Shown here piece by piece: positions 2,305-61,616 of a DNA stretch of 64,000 bases. Every line of letters starts with the position of its first letter. Positions within the stretch are counted from its first letter, which is position 1. The notes beneath the pieces are model-generated. The model had not been told where the DNA came from, ran no database searches, and saw only the letters and a program-made list of their open reading frames with translations. The stretch lies in sequence record OP729297.1; one strand, written 5' to 3'. The position numbers were made by a program, and so were the translations under genes.

Positions 2305-4644
2305 ATGGCCACTGAATCTATCTACGTTGACGCATTGCGTCTAACGCCTCAGGGAGAACAGGCCGTTGCGAACGCTAACGCTGGTGGACTTGCTATTCAA
2401 CCAGTGTCGTTTAAAGCAGGTGACTTTGTTGGCTCTAACCCTTCTGTGGTTCCAGAGCAGTTACTTGGCAGCGAGCTTGCGTCGGGCGCATTGTCGTATG
2501 TTCAGGTTCTTACCGAGAACAGTGCCCGCTTTATCTTTGATATTAAAGTCAACTACGTTGCAGGCGAATCGCTGAAACGAGTTGGTGAGCTGTTGATCAT
2601 GCTTTCTGACAACCGACCTTTTGGTCACGTTGTTCTGCAAGAGCCTATCATCGCCGTACCGAACTCTATCAATCGCGTTAGCCTTCTCGTACATATTCAG
2701 CAGGACATCCAAAAGATTCTTGCTGTGAAAATGGCTGACTACACATCTATACCGAGTGTAGCAACGCTCCAGAACTTACCGAGCTTGAGCGATAACGTGT
2801 TCAATGCCGTGTCGGTTCTTGATATGCACGTTAACTCTGACGGCACACGCTCTCCAGGTACTGCATATCGTTATGGACAAGGCTCATACTATTGGGCTTT
2901 CAGTGAGCATGACCGTGTGTTCAGCGGCCAGATTACTGCCGCAGGATTCATCAATGCAAACACGTTCAAGATTGCTTCGCTGTCCTCAGTGTTGAAGGCT
3001 AACGAGGTTGTTCTGATTCAGACAATCTCGGGTACGGGCGCTGGTGCGTGTCGTCACTTCAAATACACGAATGGTCAACTGGTCAACATGGACAGCGCGA
3101 TTCCATTCGTTAGCGCACAGACAACTATTGCCGTGTGGCGACGCATCACTAACCCAACAACTCCGTCTGCTGGCATTCCGTGGCCGCTGAATAACGATGT
3201 ACCAGAAGCGTGGGCATTGTACAGAGGCAAAGACTTGCAGCCGTATTGGGGACCTGTTGCTGGTGGTACTCGTCAAACAACTGGTACGCTGTTTGTTCCT
3301 CCAGGCAAACTGTTATTCAGTTCTGTTGTGACTACAGCAACGCCTGATAAGCTGCGCTACACGCTGTCTGAGATTCTCGATAGCTCAACCGACCTGTTGC
3401 TTGGTACGTCAGGTGTTCTCCAGCCGCGTACTGCCTACAGTGTTGTTGATGACCAGCTTCTGCTTTCGTCTTATCCTGAACAACGTATGCAACTCGATAT
3501 GCGTCAGTTCCGCGTTGAGCCTTCTCAAGGTCACGTTGTTCTGTTTGAGACATACGAAGGTGTTGGCGACGGACAGACTGCGCTGTTTAAACTCGGCAAC
3601 AAACCGATTGATAGCGTTGACATGGTGTTCTGTGTCGTCGGTTCAACGTGGCAGCCTACCACCGTGTATAAACTCACGAATGGTAACAGCGTAACGTTAA
3701 CCGAAGCAATCCCGTCAGGTCAGAAGTACACATTCTATGTAGCTCGCTATGAAGAACGCGCCAACTGGTCTACTCGTATTCGTGTTGCTCAGTATCGCCT
3801 GCCTTATGATGCTGATACATTTGTTCTGCCAACTACGCCACTGAACAAGTCGCATTGCGTTATGGCCATGAGCGGCCTGACAGTACACACGCAGGACTTC
3901 ACAGTAGCGGGCAATGTGCTGAAAACGTTGTCGCCTATTCCTGCCGACACACTCATTGAGATCACAATCTTTGAGAACGTTATGGCAGTAGGCTCGAAAG
4001 ACAGTTCGGTCGATGGCGTTATCATTGATGCTATCCCTACGCCGACTGGCTACATGTTCAAACGTCAAGGTCTGCCTCCTATCGACGTGCCTATCGCTGC
4101 ACCTGAAATCATTCAGGGTGAGGGCATTCAGATTACAGGCAAGTGGCCAGAGATTACAATTCGTAATACTCAGGCTCTCGCCGAAGAAGCTGACCCACGC
4201 AACATGTACAACATTCAGCAGAATGCGGACGATTCGGAAGAGCTGGTTATTCAGCAGCGCATCGAGTTCAAGAAAGGCATCATGCTTACGTGTGTCGCCG
4301 ACTTCCAGTGCCAACTAGGTCCTGGCTTTGCTGCCACCAGCGGTAAAGAGCATCTCGAATATGTTCTGTCGTTCAAGGTGCCTGGTACATCCGAAGCTGA
4401 ATATGGGCGTGGCCTTAAAGGCACAGGCAGTGCTGGCTTTAACGTTGTTACTTCTGATGCGAGTCTGACAGAAGTGATTGCGTATTCAAACGTTAGCCTG
4501 ACGCAGATGTTCACGGTGCTGATAGAAAACCAACCTCAAGGCTTCATTGATATCGTTGCTAAAGTGCGTATCGTTAACGCGCAGATTACAAGCTACGGTT
4601 CGAAGCTGTCAGGTAACTTGTGCATTAAGGTTGAACCGAAATGA
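2305..4644 (+). CDS. Tail fibre/baseplate-associated protein with tail-collar-like N-terminus and three ~60-70 aa beta repeats
   Basis: GGAG RBS then ATG at 2305. The N-terminus ([14 protein letters not shown]) resembles tail-fibre attachment domains, followed by repeats of the type [10 protein letters not shown]...QP..Y...N.VTL...P.G. Confidence 0.55.
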
Positions 4645-35338: not shown

Positions 35339-35400
35339 ACTTTGTTCCTTCTGATATTTGATAGATAGTTAGTTTAGATAGATAACTTTAGCAGTTAGTA

Positions 35401-35411
35401 TTTACAGATTT
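35401..35411 (-). promoter_or_regulatory. AAWCTGTAAA motif
   Basis: AAATCTGTAAA on the - strand, 63 nt upstream of start 35338. Confidence 0.45.
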
Positions 35412-39439: not shown

Positions 39440-40006
39440 CTATGCTTTATTTACAGATTTCAACATAGCCAGTGTTTCGTTGACCACACCCATGGTATCG
39501 AGCATAGCTTGCCTGTGGTTGGCCAGTTCTACACGCAGACGCTCAAGGGTGGTCTTTAGGGTACGCAGTCTATTGCGTCCCGTGGGTGCTGGGTAGAATC
39601 GAATCTTCTCTGTGCAGGAAGCCAGTTCGAAATAGATGGTGGCCTCTTTTGGCGTAACTGAATAGCAGAAAGCAACACTGCCTGTGGCTCCTGTCTCAAT
39701 CGGGTTCAACCACTCACGGCAATGGCCAGTGTTAGTCGTACCCAACAGATCCATGAACGCATTCAGGCAGTCGATGATTTTGGTCAGCTTGTCGATGTAT
39801 AACTGATCGCAGTTATCGCGTATCGCCTCGGTTGCATCTAGTGTGTGAATCACAACGTAAGAATCTCCCCACGCCACAGCGAACTGCCCGTAAGCAGTAC
39901 CGCTGAATGGACTCACGTACACCTCCCAATTAACGGCTCTTAGCGACGGACTTTTTGCGAGAAACTTTCTTCCCGTCTTTTTGACTATTGGCTTTGGCTG
40001 CTGCAC
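39440..40006 (-). CDS. Hypothetical protein
   Basis: 188 aa. Confidence 0.55.
   Translation of the reverse strand: MQQPKPIVKKTGRKFLAKSPSLRAVNWEVYVSPFSGTAYGQFAVAWGDSYVVIHTLDATEAIRDNCDQLYIDKLTKIIDCLNAFMDLLGTTNTGHCREWLNPIETGATGSVAFCYSVTPKEATIYFELASCTEKIRFYPAPTGRNRLRTLKTTLERLRVELANHRQAMLDTMGVVNETLAMLKSVNKA
39450..39460 (-). promoter_or_regulatory. AAWCTGTAAA motif
   Basis: AAATCTGTAAA, 40 nt upstream of start 39410. Confidence 0.45.
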
Positions 40007-43512: not shown

Positions 43513-43543
43513 ATTGATTCTCTCTTTGTTTGTGTATCAGATA

Positions 43544-43554
43544 TTTACAGTATT
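43544..43554 (-). promoter_or_regulatory. AAWCTGTAAA motif
   Basis: AATACTGTAAA, intergenic, just after a terminator and 32 nt upstream of start 43512. Confidence 0.55.
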
Positions 43555-44968: not shown

Positions 44969-45135
44969 TAACTCTGCCCCTTGATAAAACGTTGCCATTT
45001 GATTTCGAAGTGTGTGACAAGCGCAGCGCAAACGATGCCTATCTTCTCACACCACTCATATGTAACGTCCATTGTCGATAACGAGTACGCTACCAGAATC
45101 CATGTAGCGAGGAATATTATCGGGTAGCGTATCAT
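44968..45135 (-). CDS. Small membrane protein, 55 aa (not in the track)
   Basis: MIRYPIIFLATWILVAYSLS...; fills the gap exactly, with TAATG coupling. Confidence 0.5.
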   Translation of the reverse strand: MIRYPIIFLATWILVAYSLSTMDVTYEWCEKIGIVCAALVTHFEIKWQRFIKGQS

Positions 45136-45136
45136 T

Positions 45137-56360: not shown

Positions 56361-56820
56361 AGACTTTCTCCCGCAGTGCACCGAAGTGGTAGAGCTTACC
56401 TTCTGTTTTAGACTCGCGCAGTTGCTTAACACGCTCGGCGCGAAGTACAGCCCACGTAAACACGGCAGTTGTCAGGTCAGGACCAACGATACGCGGTCCG
56501 TTCTGCAACGCACGTCCGTAGTCCTGAGATAGGTTGCGATAGATAGGATTGCGGGACCACACGTTAAACTCCCACACAATTCTGTCTTCTTCGCCAGGCT
56601 TTGGTTTGTGTCGTGGATCGACAGTGCGCTCGACATGCAGACCATAGCGCTCAATCACAAGCAGAATGTTCTCTGCCGACTCAGGACGCCAGTGACTGAC
56701 AAGACCCATTGGTTTGCCAGTTGCATCGACGTAACAGGCAGATGGGCCGTCGCTTACTACGGACATATCGAGCGCCTTAACCAGACGCTCACGTAACTCA
56801 GTGAAGGACGAGGGTGCCAT
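56341..56820 (-). CDS. Hypothetical protein
   Basis: 159-aa ORF. Confidence 0.5.
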   Translation of the reverse strand: MAPSSFTELRERLVKALDMSVVSDGPSACYVDATGKPMGLVSHWRPESAENILLVIERYGLHVERTVDPRHKPKPGEEDRIVWEFNVWSRNPIYRNLSQDYGRALQNGPRIVGPDLTTAVFTWAVLRAERVKQLRESKTEGKLYHFGALREKVYVSPAE

Positions 56821-57181
56821 CGACTACCTCTGCTTTATCGAAGCCACGAATAGTCGTGAAGCTATCGTTATCACGGAACACAATGAAGTCACCAGGCTTG
56901 AGTTCGACTTCAACGTCCATATCACGAACGTTGAGTACCATGTAGGCATAACCGCCTACGATGGAATCTTCGATGCAGTTTGGAAACAGCTTGTCGCACA
57001 CGCGGTTGCGAACAAAGTCAGGCGCAGCTTTAGGATCGCCGTCAAAGAAGATGATATCAAACAGCGGACCATCTTCATAGCCGTTACGCAACTGCTCCAG
57101 AAAACGCATTTTCAATACAGCAACGATCTTACGCACTCTTGCCTCCGAACTGCTCAGGGAATTTGTTGTACAGGTACGCAT
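56798..57181 (-). CDS. Hypothetical protein (true start may be 57109)
   Basis: ELKPGDFIVF...F C-terminal motif. Confidence 0.5.
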   Translation of the reverse strand: MRTCTTNSLSSSEARVRKIVAVLKMRFLEQLRNGYEDGPLFDIIFFDGDPKAAPDFVRNRVCDKLFPNCIEDSIVGGYAYMVLNVRDMDVEVELKPGDFIVFRDNDSFTTIRGFDKAEVVDGTLVLH

Positions 57182-57828: not shown

Positions 57829-58410
57829 CTACTCTCCCAGCAGACTGTGGATTTGAACGTACACCATGCCTTGTTGTTTATTGTAGTCGGCACTTACGTT
57901 TACGTCGCGGTTGTTGGACAGATGCGCACTACCTTTCCAGTAGCCGTCGTATTGCTCTTTCATGTTGTACGCACGAACGCAGGTAACGTCGTTCTCTTTC
58001 AGACTGTCCAGCGTGTCGAGAATGCGGCACACGTCCTGTTCAACCTGCACGTTGTTATCTTTGGACATAGCGAGGAAGCTGGTACCGAAAGAGATTACAC
58101 ACAACAACATCCACGCCCAGAAGATATTGCGATTCTTTTTCTTCGTCAGTGTATCGCGCTTCCACAAGTAGATAGGAATGAACAGCAACCAGCCCCACGA
58201 TGGCGAAGTGTTGCCGCTGTCCATAATCTTACGAACATCGAGAACCACCGCAACCGAGTAGATTGCGACAACAACGATTGACGGCCAGATGGCGTTGTAG
58301 TCGAACAGGAAGTCACTGGCCATTGCCCAAAGAATACCGATGAACATCAGACCCAGCGGCCAGCTATCGTACTCACGCAGGTCGAAATACTTAGACAGGA
58401 ACTCTTTCAT
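57829..58410 (-). CDS. Multi-pass membrane protein with C-terminal soluble domain
   Basis: Four hydrophobic segments, GWLLFIPIYLWKR motif; AAGGA RBS. Confidence 0.7.
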   Translation of the reverse strand: MKEFLSKYFDLREYDSWPLGLMFIGILWAMASDFLFDYNAIWPSIVVVAIYSVAVVLDVRKIMDSGNTSPSWGWLLFIPIYLWKRDTLTKKKNRNIFWAWMLLCVISFGTSFLAMSKDNNVQVEQDVCRILDTLDSLKENDVTCVRAYNMKEQYDGYWKGSAHLSNNRDVNVSADYNKQQGMVYVQIHSLLGE

Positions 58411-58781: not shown

Positions 58782-59624
58782 TCAGTAGTTCATTGCCAGA
58801 ATTTCAACAGTACCATGCGAGCCACTCTGGCCGTTGTTCATCGCATAGCTTTTGTTCGGGTACAGCACGGTAGTTGCGTGTTTCTTTAACCAGCGTTTCA
58901 ACAAATCGTTTGAGAAGTGTCGGTGCTCGGTCACGTTGCTCAACATCCAGGGTACACCTAAACGATTGAGTTGTTCCAGAGTGGCAAGCAGGTTACGCTC
59001 GTTCGTTTCAGTCCACTTGCCATACTGCATTGCACCGCTCGCCAGATATGGAGGGTCGAAGTAGCAGAACGTGTTGCAGTTCAGTTGGTGGCCTAAGCGA
59101 CTCAGCAACTTACCATACTTCATGTTCGTCAGGTGAACGCCTTGCATGTGACTGTGGAAGGTAGTGAGTTCGTGCTCCAGCTCGTCGAACTTACCAATCA
59201 AGCCACGATCACCAAAGCCTACGTTGTACACACCCTGCTGGTTGAAGCGCAGCATGTTCGAGTGCGCGTGTCTGTGTGCAACGTAATGTAGTATCGGTGT
59301 ACGCTTCTTCTGGACGACAGTTCGAAACGCATCATAGTTCGCTTCGTTGCTGTTTGTCAGACACCAGTGTTTGACCAGGCGCTTAACTTGACCGAGAGTT
59401 TTCTTCGGGTCTTGTTCCACCAGCATCTTAACGATCTCAAACACCTGAGGACTAAGCTCATTGTACACGCGAAACTTCTGTGGCATGTTAGCGCAGACGG
59501 TAGCACTACCACCAAACACATCTACCATACGCGGACAGTCCTGTACGCTTGGTGTGTGCTCAAGAATAAGAGGGATAAGGCTTCGCTTATTGCCCTGATA
59601 ACGGATTGGACTGATTACGGTCAT
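58782..59624 (-). CDS. dam: Dam-family (D12 class) N6-adenine DNA methyltransferase
   Basis: SPIRY.GNK, D.FGGSA.V, YFDPPY; target sequence unknown. Confidence 0.88.
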   Translation of the reverse strand: MTVISPIRYQGNKRSLIPLILEHTPSVQDCPRMVDVFGGSATVCANMPQKFRVYNELSPQVFEIVKMLVEQDPKKTLGQVKRLVKHWCLTNSNEANYDAFRTVVQKKRTPILHYVAHRHAHSNMLRFNQQGVYNVGFGDRGLIGKFDELEHELTTFHSHMQGVHLTNMKYGKLLSRLGHQLNCNTFCYFDPPYLASGAMQYGKWTETNERNLLATLEQLNRLGVPWMLSNVTEHRHFSNDLLKRWLKKHATTVLYPNKSYAMNNGQSGSHGTVEILAMNY

Positions 59625-59644
59625 TTTTCTCTCCTTTATCAGTA

Positions 59645-59655
59645 TTTACAGTTTT
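59645..59655 (-). promoter_or_regulatory. AAWCTGTAAA motif
   Basis: AAAACTGTAAA, intergenic, 21 nt upstream of start 59624. Confidence 0.5.
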
Positions 59656-59776
59656 TAAGCGCTTCCCACTGCTCAAGAAAAAGGTGGTGTTTCTACGCTG
59701 CCTACACATGGTTTTATACTGTTTACGCACGGTTCTACATGGTCCTTATGGGCTTGTTTTAGTTGTCTAAGATCAG

Positions 59777-59803
59777 AAAAGGGCAGCCTAATGGCCACCC
59801 TTT
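59777..59803 (-). terminator. Rho-independent terminator
   Basis: AAAGGGTGGCC-ATTA-GGCTGCCCTTTT on the - strand. Confidence 0.85.
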
Positions 59804-59808
59804 GAGTA

Positions 59809-59835
59809 TTACCAGTCGTAGAACCAATCGCTCAT
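59809..59835 (-). CDS. Micro-ORF MSDWFYDW (8 aa)
   Basis: TAAAGGAG RBS 6 nt before ATG; stop 5 nt before the terminator stem. Confidence 0.5.
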   Translation of the reverse strand: MSDWFYDW

Positions 59836-59862
59836 GATCGTCTCCTTTAGCTGGTTAGGTTA

Positions 59863-60246
59863 TTAGGCTTCGATCTCATGATAGTATGAGTTATCGAACA
59901 CGGCCTGCTCAACCTTATCCCGCACAGCAGCCCATTCAGCCAGAGTGCGCTCAGGCCCACAGAAGTGCCAAATTTCACACTCGCCACCTTCAAGGAAGAA
60001 AGCGAGAGCTGGTACGCTTACGTGACTCTCGTTATCAGGCAGAACGTCGTCTGGATGCAGACCGATATCAGCAGTGAACTGTTCGATGTGACCAGCACCA
60101 ATCATCTCACGATGCAGTGCCTGTACAGCGTCCAGATTAATGACGTGGTTAACAGGAGCTAGCTGGCCGAAAAAGTCAGTGGCCGACACAGTTGATACTG
60201 TAGGTACAGACTTAACGATCACAGGTGGTCGAATAAAACGAGGCAT
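59863..60246 (-). CDS. Hypothetical protein
   Basis: 127 aa. Confidence 0.55.
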   Translation of the reverse strand: MPRFIRPPVIVKSVPTVSTVSATDFFGQLAPVNHVINLDAVQALHREMIGAGHIEQFTADIGLHPDDVLPDNESHVSVPALAFFLEGGECEIWHFCGPERTLAEWAAVRDKVEQAVFDNSYYHEIEA

Positions 60247-60260
60247 GTTTGTGCTCCAGA

Positions 60261-60695
60261 TTACTTGGCGACTACTGCACGAACAGCGCAGTCTTTGGCT
60301 TCGAGAAGTTTACGCAGACCCGCAGACTTCTCAGCACCGTCAGGCAGATACAGGTCCATCTCTTGCGCCAGCAGCGCGAAAGGTTTACTGACACGCTGCA
60401 AATGAGGCGGCAGATGGGCGTATGCGAAATACTGCATGATCTGATTTTTCGACATGGCGGAGTCGGTGCGGATGCAGGCTTCTTCCAGAACAACTTCTGG
60501 AGCAAACTGATACAGGTCAGCCTGAGCCGAAGCCGCTTCGCCAGCATTCTGCAACATGTTCCACGCCTTCTCGTCAGCATGAACAACGGTCGCGCCACTG
60601 TCTTTCAGCATCGCAGCAATGCGACAGTAGGCAGCAGACTTACCGCTACCAACATCACCGAGAATACGCACGATGATTTTGTGTTTATTTTCCAT
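60261..60695 (-). CDS. Two-part protein: P-loop-like N-terminus plus helical-hairpin domain with possible Acb2/Tad1-like register
   Basis: GDVGSGKS; QYFAYAHLP.HLQ.VS.PF..LA...LP.G.EKS..LRKLLEAKDCAVRA. Confidence 0.5.
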   Translation of the reverse strand: MENKHKIIVRILGDVGSGKSAAYCRIAAMLKDSGATVVHADEKAWNMLQNAGEAASAQADLYQFAPEVVLEEACIRTDSAMSKNQIMQYFAYAHLPPHLQRVSKPFALLAQEMDLYLPDGAEKSAGLRKLLEAKDCAVRAVVAK

Positions 60696-60859
60696 TACGA
60701 ACATCCTTTAAGGAGATAACGAAAGACCATGAAGTTACAGAAACCCACAGCGATAAGTCCAACAATTGATAGATTGCAGGAAGGGTCCCACTTCAACCAA
60801 AGATTCAGTACAAGAGTGCCAACTGCAAGCACAATAAAGATGATGCAGATGACATACAT
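60695..60859 (-). CDS. Small two-TM protein, 54 aa (not in the track)
   Basis: MYVICIIFIVLAVGTLVLNLW...; TAATG coupling to the 60695 start. Confidence 0.45.
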   Translation of the reverse strand: MYVICIIFIVLAVGTLVLNLWLKWDPSCNLSIVGLIAVGFCNFMVFRYLLKGCS

Positions 60860-60882
60860 TATCACGCAGAAAGTTTTCAGAG

Positions 60883-61399
60883 CTACTTCCTCACGAATGG
60901 GAGAGTTAGATCGAGAAGTTCACTGTCAGTCATTTCATCAAGGTCTTTGCTGGTGGTGCCTAGTCCAAACGTCTGACTAAACTTTTCACCTGCTGCATCG
61001 TTGTCACCAAGACAGACGAAGCGTAGACCGAGAAGACGCAACTGATGGTAAAGGTGCAGACTAACATCCGAACCTAGAACGGACCAAGCGTTAAGTCCAA
61101 CGCGATGCAGAGCACATGCCTTGAACACAGACTCAGTTAAGAATACGGTCGACCCGTTCAGGTTTAATTTCCGATCCCCACACCAACTGCTTGCCACCGA
61201 ATGCTCGCGTGAAGTAGCGACACTCTTTTGGGTTCTTATCGTGCTTTGGTGCATCTGGTGTGTAGACCTGTAGACCGCGCATGGCTCGATCAAAGCCAAA
61301 CAGAGGCACGGTCATTTGCGTTTCACTTAGCCAACAGTGATAGGAAGAAGGAGCAAATCCCCTTGATTCCAGATGACGATACAAGCTCGTTGTGTTCAT
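60883..61399 (-). pseudogene. Toprim/primase-like gene split by a +1 frameshift near 61165-61180
   Basis: One frame gives ..RYFT...LVWGSE; the +1 frame continues LNLNGSTVFLTESVFKA...LGS...GDNDAAG...KDLDE. Confidence 0.7.
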
Positions 61400-61616
61400 G
61401 GTGCTCTCCTGATTCGTACTCAGAGAACTGCATCACAAACAACGATTCTGGGATTACCCACACGCTATCAGCAGGTCTGTCTGACGTAGGTTCGAGATTA
61501 CGATAGACAACCATAGGTAGTGAGCAATCCTGTCCGTGTGCAGCAATGCAGTCAACAATAAATGGCTTGTCGCTATGCGACTTGTAGATATGGCCGACTG
61601 TAATGTCACTAATCAT
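61323..61616 (-). CDS. DUF1653-like protein
   Basis: G.IYK.H...F.V..IA.H......MVVYR...VWV.P...F. Confidence 0.55.
   Translation of the reverse strand: MISDITVGHIYKSHSDKPFIVDCIAAHGQDCSLPMVVYRNLEPTSDRPADSVWVIPESLFVMQFSEYESGEHHEHNELVSSSGIKGICSFFLSLLAK

Follow-up and report, generated by a model that had tools for sequence, protein, structure and literature searches.

Several systems built on very short peptides have been described. Attenuator leader peptides are represented by the trpL, pheL, and pyrL type, and the arrest leaders ermCL, the 8-residue cmlA leader, and tnaC are very short open reading frames (ORFs) with a conserved amino acid sequence. The arbitrium AimP products, SHP (e.g., DIIIIVGG), and XIP (with a D-W-W core) arise by cleavage of longer precursors that are secreted, in Gram-positive systems with RRNPP/Rgg receptors. 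The 7-codon gene mccA encodes the microcin C precursor and is followed by a terminator; ribosome binding induces termination, stabilizes a short RNA, and permits its repeated translation (PMC4231749, PMC6495379), and MccA sequences are not conserved (PMC6495379). Here, we analyze an 8-codon ORF (MSDWFYDW, termed the micro-ORF) in a 64,000-nucleotide (nt) stretch of sequence record OP729297.1, referred to as the window, where it precedes an intrinsic terminator (T1) and a Dam-family DNA methylase gene (dam). Sequence comparisons indicate that this micro-ORF is real and is kept as a peptide (M-x-D-W-F-Y followed by GG or DW) in two genera of plant-pathogen phages, Alexandravirus and Salmondvirus.

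Like mccA, the micro-ORF appears from its sequence to be a directly translated frame of 7 to 8 codons with a strong Shine-Dalgarno (SD) site and without leader or processing and, in Alexandravirus only, an intrinsic terminator lies a few bases downstream, with further genes beyond. Since this Alexandravirus anatomy is similar to that of mccA, T1 may contribute to a stable 3' fragment that serves as the template for translating the peptide. Unlike mccA, however, the micro-ORF stands at the end of an operon and has no promoter of its own, and the terminator is not kept in Salmondvirus. Membership in the mccA family was rejected because the peptides end in W or G and have no C-terminal Asn, because their sequence is conserved, and because no ThiF/MccB-like enzyme (PF00899) gave a match above the cutoff in SNUABM_33, JA29, or JA33, the controls being positive. 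Of these genomes, SNUABM_33 is a relative with 98% identity at this locus that was used for the counts given below.

The micro-ORF shares with attenuator leaders a short frame containing Trp, Phe, and Tyr codons near an intrinsic terminator upstream of a gene, but it has no runs of sensed codons, no antiterminator alternative, and no fixed geometry; moreover, the terminator and the following gene are separated by a promoter-like motif, and the ORF is conserved where no terminator follows. As in arrest leaders, it is the amino acid sequence of a very short ORF that is conserved, and not its mere presence. The differences are that no regulated downstream SD or Rho site was identified at the micro-ORF, that its C-terminal residues vary (DW or GG), and that the downstream context differs between the genera, in whose folds no conserved downstream structure common to both was found. 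With the arbitrium, SHP, and XIP peptides there is a resemblance only, consisting of a length of 6 to 8 residues, acidic residues followed by hydrophobic or aromatic ones, and a GG ending in some alleles, whereas the octapeptide is the whole ORF and the hosts are Gram negative.

Anatomy of the micro-ORF locus

The region from 59600 to 60000 is 100% identical to Erwinia phage vB_Ea_2910A (OP729297), an Alexandravirus jumbo phage of 262.9 kb in which record coordinates correspond to window coordinates plus 62000, and 43 related phage records match this region with identities of 73 to 100%. Between approximately 40000 and 64000, all annotated genes are on the minus strand and tightly packed, and the segment 59625-59862 is the sole true noncoding gap of this 24-kb array, since the other apparent gaps contain unannotated small ORFs. 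The features of the locus are listed in Table 1. A first-pass annotation made from the letters of the window had described the SD site, the ATG, the peptide MSDWFYDW, the TAA, the 5-nt spacer, the terminator, and the downstream Dam gene, and all of these were found as described. The G+C core of T1 has a free energy of about -13.5 kcal/mol, which the A-U extension lowers to about -18 kcal/mol (ViennaRNA); the hairpin folded in every context tried, although it was absent from the output of a simple consensus terminator scan. A search of 59300-60300 against Rfam returned subthreshold noise only.

The micro-ORF is unannotated in every GenBank record examined, and a full-text literature search for the peptide found no paper. 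A second copy of the ORF core was detected neither in the window (repeat search) nor, beyond the known site, in SNUABM_33, JA29, or JA33. In this one genome alone, the micro-ORF is not beyond chance: the window contains 33 strict matches to an SD site followed by ATG (some double-counted), 27 of which open long frames, and five distinct sites of this kind open frames of fewer than 40 codons, four of them with fewer than 20. What raises the micro-ORF above chance is its conservation in relatives.

Table 1. Coordinates of the micro-ORF and of surrounding features in the window
Feature	Position	Strand	Remarks
193-aa (amino acid) protein	57829..58410	-	Four predicted membrane helices and a 75-residue soluble tail
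Dam-family DNA adenine methylase gene (D12 class)	58782..59624	-	Pfam PF02086, E 5.7e-23; annotated in OP729297
CTGTAAATA, promoter-like phage motif	59643..59651	-	Ends 18 nt before the dam ATG; first base 27 nt before
CTGTAAATA, all copies	59643-59651, 43542-43550, 39448-39456, 35399-35407	-	Often preceded by AAT
Highly conserved noncoding block	59652..59774	-	Free of indels; between T1 and the motif
Intrinsic terminator T1	59775..59803	-	11-bp stem with two G-U pairs; 5' arm 59803-59793, loop ATTA 59792-59789, 3' arm 59788-59778, T-run TTTTCT 59780-59775
Stop-to-stem spacer	59804..59808	-	5 nt here; variable in relatives
Micro-ORF, eight codons, MSDWFYDW plus TAA	59809..59835	-	ATG 59835-59833; then AGC GAT TGG TTC TAC GAC TGG; TAA 59811-59809
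Predicted SD hairpin	59820..59845	-	SD pairs with codons 3 to 6, AUG in the loop; Alexandravirus only (RNAfold, alifold)
SD-ATG spacer	59836-59841	-	6 nt
SD site AAAGGAG	59842..59848	-	GGAGG in most relatives
127-aa gene	59863..60246	-	Just upstream; the micro-ORF is the last cistron behind it
Gene26-like protein	60261..60704	-	P-loop N-domain and widespread phage C-domain; syntenic anchor with Salmondvirus

Conservation within Alexandravirus

To keep the ORF from biasing the sample, the Alexandravirus relatives were selected on the basis of T1 and the sequence downstream of it. The micro-ORF, with its SD site, ATG, eight codons, and stop, is kept in 12 of the 14 viral contigs obtained in this way. 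The alleles encountered are MSDWFYDW, MNDWFYDW (one with TAG), MSDWFYGG, and MNDWFYGG, and the SD core GGAG is invariant in 13/13 Alexandravirus-type sequences. The 31 nt from GGAG through the first base of codon 7 contain only three variable positions. By comparison, the four-fold degenerate sites of dam differ from the window by 13 to 64% across the relatives, with 5/35 and 13/70 (14 to 19%) of such sites invariant across the set, and the post-stop spacer and the terminator loop, both adjoining the ORF, are saturated with changes and indels. The near-frozen state of the SD-ORF stretch next to diverged dam sites and a scrambled spacer and loop indicates that the module is strongly constrained and does not persist as a passive relic.

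The module formed by the SD site, the ORF, the terminator, and the conserved block was found behind four different upstream genes, namely, the 127-aa gene present in this window, a 110-aa gene (SNUABM_33, SNUABM_1, and phB78), the 142-aa gene26 (Alexandra, SNUABM_35, and SNUABM_2), and an unannotated Zn-ribbon-like small ORF (SNUABM_30, SNUABM_32, and metagenomic contigs). The upstream stop lies within or beside the SD site in three of these four contexts and 24 nt before the ATG in this window. The Zn-ribbon-like ORF, which ends in ...EPECPHCGCRVYFS, directly adjoins the micro-ORF in SNUABM_30, SNUABM_32, and the metagenomic Alexandravirus contigs. In contigs from wastewater and straw metatranscriptome libraries, the 110-aa gene (320 nt) is inserted between the 127-aa gene and the micro-ORF; as judged from these sequences, arrangements with and without this insertion (59857/59865) both circulate in nature.

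Relatives carry either the intact ORF or none, and decayed copies were not seen. In SNUABM_45, the upstream stop directly precedes the terminator, and there is no micro-ORF.

Conservation in a second genus

The search across genera employed a degenerate back-translation of M-[S/N]-D-W-F-Y, and later patterns freed other positions. The back-translated pattern matched the same 8-codon ORF in the Dickeya phages JA29 and JA11/JA13/JA33 (Salmondvirus), whereas the patterns with other positions freed added a MRDWFYGG allele in a 256.7-kb metagenomic relative and a further allele, with GGA at codon 8, in a 1.7-kb Alexandravirus fragment. The Salmondvirus-like alleles are thus MNDWFYGG and MRDWFYGG, and all known Salmondvirus genomes carry the micro-ORF. 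The ORF always has eight codons, both in the 13 Alexandravirus-type sequences and in the three Salmondvirus-like lineages. Each lineage has its own SD site, located 5 to 9 nt from the ATG over all lineages; in the Salmondvirus-like phages it is AGGAG or AAGGA at a distance of 7 to 9 nt. In Salmondvirus, the start codon and the stop of a preceding ORF, which is conserved, unannotated, and 34 to 75 aa long, overlap as ATGA or ATGNNTGA, and the micro-ORF is found downstream of a gene26-like gene in both genera.

The nucleotide match between the genera amounts to 20 to 25 of 27 positions in the ORF and to only 5 to 13 of 27 in the 27-nt flank on either side, which is about random. The conserved island is coextensive with the ORF, from ATG to stop. 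Codon 2 (S, N, or R) and the DW/GG switch aside, the alleles differ only at synonymous third positions, the exchanges observed being TTC/TTT, TAC/TAT, GGC/GGT, GGT/GGC/GGA, and AAC/AAT. The SD hairpin is not conserved in Salmondvirus. A comparison of peptide-level and nucleotide-level conservation had been proposed with the first-pass annotation, and its outcome is divided: conservation is bounded by the ORF between genera, but looks nucleotide-wide inside Alexandravirus, with nearly all positions frozen.

A looser pattern (M-x-DWFY-xx-stop) returned approximately 37 extra matches without the GG or DW ending and without an SD site, with three SD-like exceptions. We judged these matches to be due to chance, and they serve as a control. 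Scans of metagenomes and genomes added the 1.7-kb Alexandravirus fragment and two chance matches.

The 1.7-kb fragment (JAVWLC010000469.1, 1715 bp) is part of a metagenome-assembled genome assigned to Raoultibacter and comprises the end of the 110-aa gene, the micro-ORF, T1, and the conserved block; its placement there is probably a binning error. In Salmondvirus, the 690-nt "gap" before the baseplate spike gene (JA29 stretch 2850-3530) contains unannotated genes, i.e., the ORF of 34 to 75 aa that overlaps the micro-ORF start and a membrane peptide of 50 to 58 aa. These are followed by about 300 nt of conserved sequence with a T1-like terminator at its end.

Relation of the micro-ORF to the terminator and dam

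In the relatives, the spacing from stop to stem ranges from 4 to 13 nt, and this spacer is rich in indels and substitutions. The longer spacers (Alexandra, SNUABM_35, and SNUABM_2) resemble a decayed copy of TCTGTAAATA, the motif following the Salmondvirus ORF. T1 shows one compensatory exchange, from G-C to C-G in phage Alexandra, and its loop varies freely. SNUABM_33 contains 32 strong terminator hairpins, about 10 of which share the form GGGTGGC-loop-GCTGCCC with T1. Its ordinary genes mostly end 2 to 14 nt before the G+C stem, and the 8 nt between the micro-ORF stop and the G+C stem are as for these ordinary gene ends. Only T1, among the 32 terminators, is preceded by an SD-led micro-ORF. 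In Salmondvirus, the ORF stop is immediately followed by TCTGTAAA(A/T), with no terminator between. Because the Salmondvirus ORF runs into this motif without a terminator, the sequences identify the feature common to both genera as "last cistron before the next promoter" and not as "ORF abutting a terminator".

No alternative pairing competing with T1 was predicted in 13 sequences or their consensus; the single-sequence and consensus folds contained the small SD hairpin and T1 only. A pairing of GGTTCTAC with GTAGAACC, an 8-nt complement downstream of T1 in the minimum free energy fold, was rejected, as the partner varies without compensation and also persists in phages without the ORF. The W, F, and Y of the core are invariant, and GG alleles carry G in place of the second W. 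A terminating ribosome protects about 9 nt beyond the stop; with the longer spacers of 10 to 13 nt, it would fall short of the stem, and stalling at the W, F, or Y codons would leave it farther away still. Close relatives without the ORF keep T1 and dam and, exceptions aside, the conserved block.

Across 13 phages, Y3 among them, 92 of the 141 alignment columns of this block are invariant. The block carries several TG(C/T)GTA-like repeats, showed neither a stable or covarying RNA fold (z +1.6) nor an Rfam match, and has the appearance of a regulatory region at the DNA level, such as an operator or promoter cluster. SNUABM_45 is without the block, and T1 is directly followed by the motif. The motif itself, CTGTAAATA, has four copies in the window versus 0.3 expected (13-fold), all on the coding strand, and its 8-mer has 35 copies in SNUABM_33 versus about 8 expected (about 4-fold), often just after terminators. 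Copies of the motif are frequently located 25 to 75 nt before gene starts. Its sequence is similar to that of the T4 late promoter, TATAAATA, and it probably represents a phage promoter class of this kind; dam would then be served by a promoter-like motif of its own.

Interpretation and alternatives

We lean towards the view that the micro-ORF is a translated micro-gene of "hairy" jumbo phages and that its peptide is the selected product. From the anatomy, distribution, constraint, synteny, and substitution pattern observed, we infer the following course of events. The micro-gene would be the last cistron of a co-directional gene string and would encode an 8-residue peptide consisting of M, a variable residue, the invariant D-W-F-Y, and then GG or DW. 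It would be translated by coupling to the upstream gene, in Salmondvirus by way of the stop/start overlap and in Alexandravirus by way of an upstream stop in or near the SD site, which is placed inside the small predicted hairpin; such a hairpin fits translation by coupling. T1 would merely end the transcription unit here, as it appears to do behind ordinary genes of the phage, and Dam would be transcribed from its own promoter-like motif. After its release, the peptide would act in trans on a host or phage target. The more specific proposal that the octapeptide, (formyl-)M-x-D-W-F-Y-G-G/D-W, is a free trans-acting micropeptide, either a specific binder (e.g., of the 193-aa protein described below) or a signal released upon lysis, is tentative, and we would not put it forward as the expected outcome. 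A functional acidic-aromatic micropeptide resembling a docking motif had also been suggested in the first-pass annotation. The functional micropeptide as such is supported to the extent that two genera share the peptide but not the surrounding nucleotides. As for the putative docking motif, many alleles have GG in place of the second acidic-aromatic pair, DW.

A number of points weigh against selection for the peptide. Constraint within Alexandravirus looks nucleotide-wide, because synonymous variation is nearly nil there (GGT/GGA only). Under peptide-only selection, the dam-derived probability that the five two-fold codons all remain unchanged is 0.05 to 0.08, which is suggestive but not decisive. 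The predicted SD hairpin (-6.3 to -8.6 kcal/mol; 3% of shuffles fold equally well; RNAfold, alifold) could explain this additional constraint, and the three variable positions fall into a bulge, into the loop, or correspond to a G-U to A-U change. The element is also dispensable, given that SNUABM_22/28-type phages, Y3, and the SNUABM_45 type are without it genome-wide; the D-W-F-Y 12-mer was found on neither strand of the SNUABM_22 and Y3 genomes. Moreover, the search patterns required D-W-F-Y, so that the lack of nonsynonymous change at these codons is partly built in and biases the synonymous count, whereas the unbiased positions give weak statistics (p of about 0.1, codons 7 and 8 in JA11), and only about nine distinct alleles are known. 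Four public RNA runs consist of contigs of related phages, with genes and spacer alike, and are silent on expression. To our knowledge, there are few precedents for a free peptide of eight residues with a specific target. Independent support, at the level of sequence and despite the pattern bias, is provided by the GG-stop ending, which the pattern did not request (chance of about 7e-4 per match), the 8-codon length, the SD sites, the synteny, the presence in all Salmondvirus genomes, and the lack of any decayed copy.

An action in cis, in which the translating of the ORF or its nascent chain alters termination at T1, stabilizes the 3' end of the upstream message, or stalls the ribosome, appears unlikely to us. 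A conserved peptide sequence is typical of arrest leaders and would suit such an action, as would the position of the ORF at the very end of the transcription unit in both genera and, in Alexandravirus, the combination of a strong SD site with an 8-codon ORF that ends 4 to 13 nt before a strong intrinsic terminator. The 7-codon mccA, with its terminator and ribosome-induced termination, offers a precedent (PMC4231749, PMC6495379). However, the spacing to the stem is not conserved, and at 10 to 13 nt a terminating ribosome is clear of it; no alternative pairing is available, the GTAGAACC complement is not kept in relatives, and in Salmondvirus no terminator stands behind the ORF. Arrest peptides are usually most constrained at their two C-terminal residues, which here alternate between DW and GG, and dam has its own promoter-like motif and is retained together with T1 in the ORF-less phages. 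The narrowest form of this alternative is the switch proposed in the first-pass annotation, in which the position of the ribosome over the Trp, Phe, and Tyr codons would control T1 and thereby gate Dam. We rejected this aromatic-sensing switch, to which we attach next to no credence: W, F, and Y occur once each and not in runs, and the variable spacing, the missing antiterminator, the intervening promoter-like motif, the Salmondvirus ORF without a terminator, and the ORF-less close relatives with both T1 and dam all speak against it. As a consequence for annotation, the terminator and dam should not be described as being under an amino-acid-sensing attenuator.

Somewhat less probable than an action in cis is a nucleotide element in which the reading frame is incidental, such as an RNA hairpin, the seed of a 3'-UTR (untranslated region)-derived RNA, the site of a DNA regulator, or an upstream promoter element. 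It would account for the fact that, in Alexandravirus, the segment spanning GGAG, the SD-ATG spacer, and codons 1 to 6 is conserved irrespective of codon position, and the local hairpin is predicted with three variable positions compatible with it. In addition, the Salmondvirus ORF occupies exactly the position expected for an upstream promoter element belonging to the TCTGTAAA motif, and the neighboring 141-nt block shows that this phage group keeps long noncoding DNA near-invariant. Yet conservation between genera is bounded by the ATG and the stop, with differences at synonymous third positions, Salmondvirus does not keep the hairpin, the Rfam search gave no match, the other 34 motif copies of SNUABM_33 have no similar upstream sequence, and neither the window nor SNUABM_33 holds a second copy. 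We consider it highly improbable that the micro-ORF is a functionless relic, whether formed when a deletion joined the two ends of a gene or as a junction of modular recombination, and kept only through descent or recent exchange. Its stop-to-terminator distance, the same as that of ordinary genes, the module border at the SD site, where upstream genes are swapped, and its absence from several close relatives would agree with such an origin. Against it stand the neighboring neutral sites, which have diverged by 13 to 64% next to a scrambled spacer and loop while the ORF is intact in every carrier, its survival in a second genus with unalignable flanks, and the fact that these genomes contain no longer gene with the same start. 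ORFs starting with MSDWFY (465 aa and other lengths) in unrelated contigs were rejected as remains of a longer gene, as they are products of the pattern.

With the peptide as the selected product, the micro-ORF appears, judging by its sequence conservation, to rank among the shortest of all known conserved genes. Frames of this length are passed over by gene finders and in surveys of small proteins. If the peptide is made and active, this would be the second functional precursor-free gene of 7 to 8 codons after mccA and the first in lytic phages, and it would suggest that phage genomes harbor a hidden class of micro-genes that only comparison can reveal. The 24-nt coding sequence offers a clean system, in that recoding separates peptide-level from RNA-level function.

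A co-occurring membrane protein

Potential partners of the peptide were sought by screening for SNUABM_33 ORFs with a tblastn match in JA29 but not in SNUABM_22 or Y3, the ORF being present in the first two genomes and absent from the last two. This screen left three real genes. The genes of a nearby cytosine-modification cassette did not follow the distribution of the micro-ORF across these four genomes, and a link to the cassette was rejected. One of them encodes the 193-aa membrane protein (Table 1), which is present in 26 phage records, all of which (26/26) have the micro-ORF; these records represent 11 lineages and include all Salmondvirus. No phage with the 193-aa protein but without the micro-ORF was found in the phage collection, whereas three lineages (Alexandra, SNUABM_35/36, and SNUABM_2/39) have the micro-ORF without the protein. 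The distance between the two genes is about 127 kb in Salmondvirus and 1.4 kb in Alexandravirus, and the association is inflated by linkage because of the short distance in the latter. Searches of Pfam, PHROGs, and the Atlas gave no match to the protein. On the basis of this distribution, we regard it as a lead, i.e., a candidate partner of the peptide. A second candidate (56798-57181) is also present in phages that lack the ORF.

Gene26-like anchor and neighboring genes

The gene26-like proteins, which anchor the synteny, share 27 to 35% identity between the two genera (alignment) and belong to the PHROGs families phrog_1761 and phrog_5120. Their 60 C-terminal residues (motif EKSxGLRKLLEAKDC) form a widespread phage domain found in at least 580 viral contigs, many of them prophage sized. 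A search by way of the gene26-like protein, which is unbiased with respect to the ORF, retrieved mostly small prophage-like contigs, and no micro-ORF was found behind the domain. In lambdoid-type contigs, this C-domain occurs as a stand-alone small gene that is followed by a terminator.

Further upstream, the primase-like region at 60883-61399 (minus strand) is split into two overlapping frames, an N-part of 87 to 88 aa and a Toprim-like part of 123 to 138 aa (Pfam Toprim_2, E 0.008), of which OP729297 annotates the N-part only. This could reflect a frameshift, a split gene, or an annotation gap. The annotation gaps at 60705-60865, 61323-61616, and 44969-45136 (minus strand) contain plausible unannotated small ORFs, among them a two-helix membrane peptide of about 50 aa and an ORF of 97 aa.

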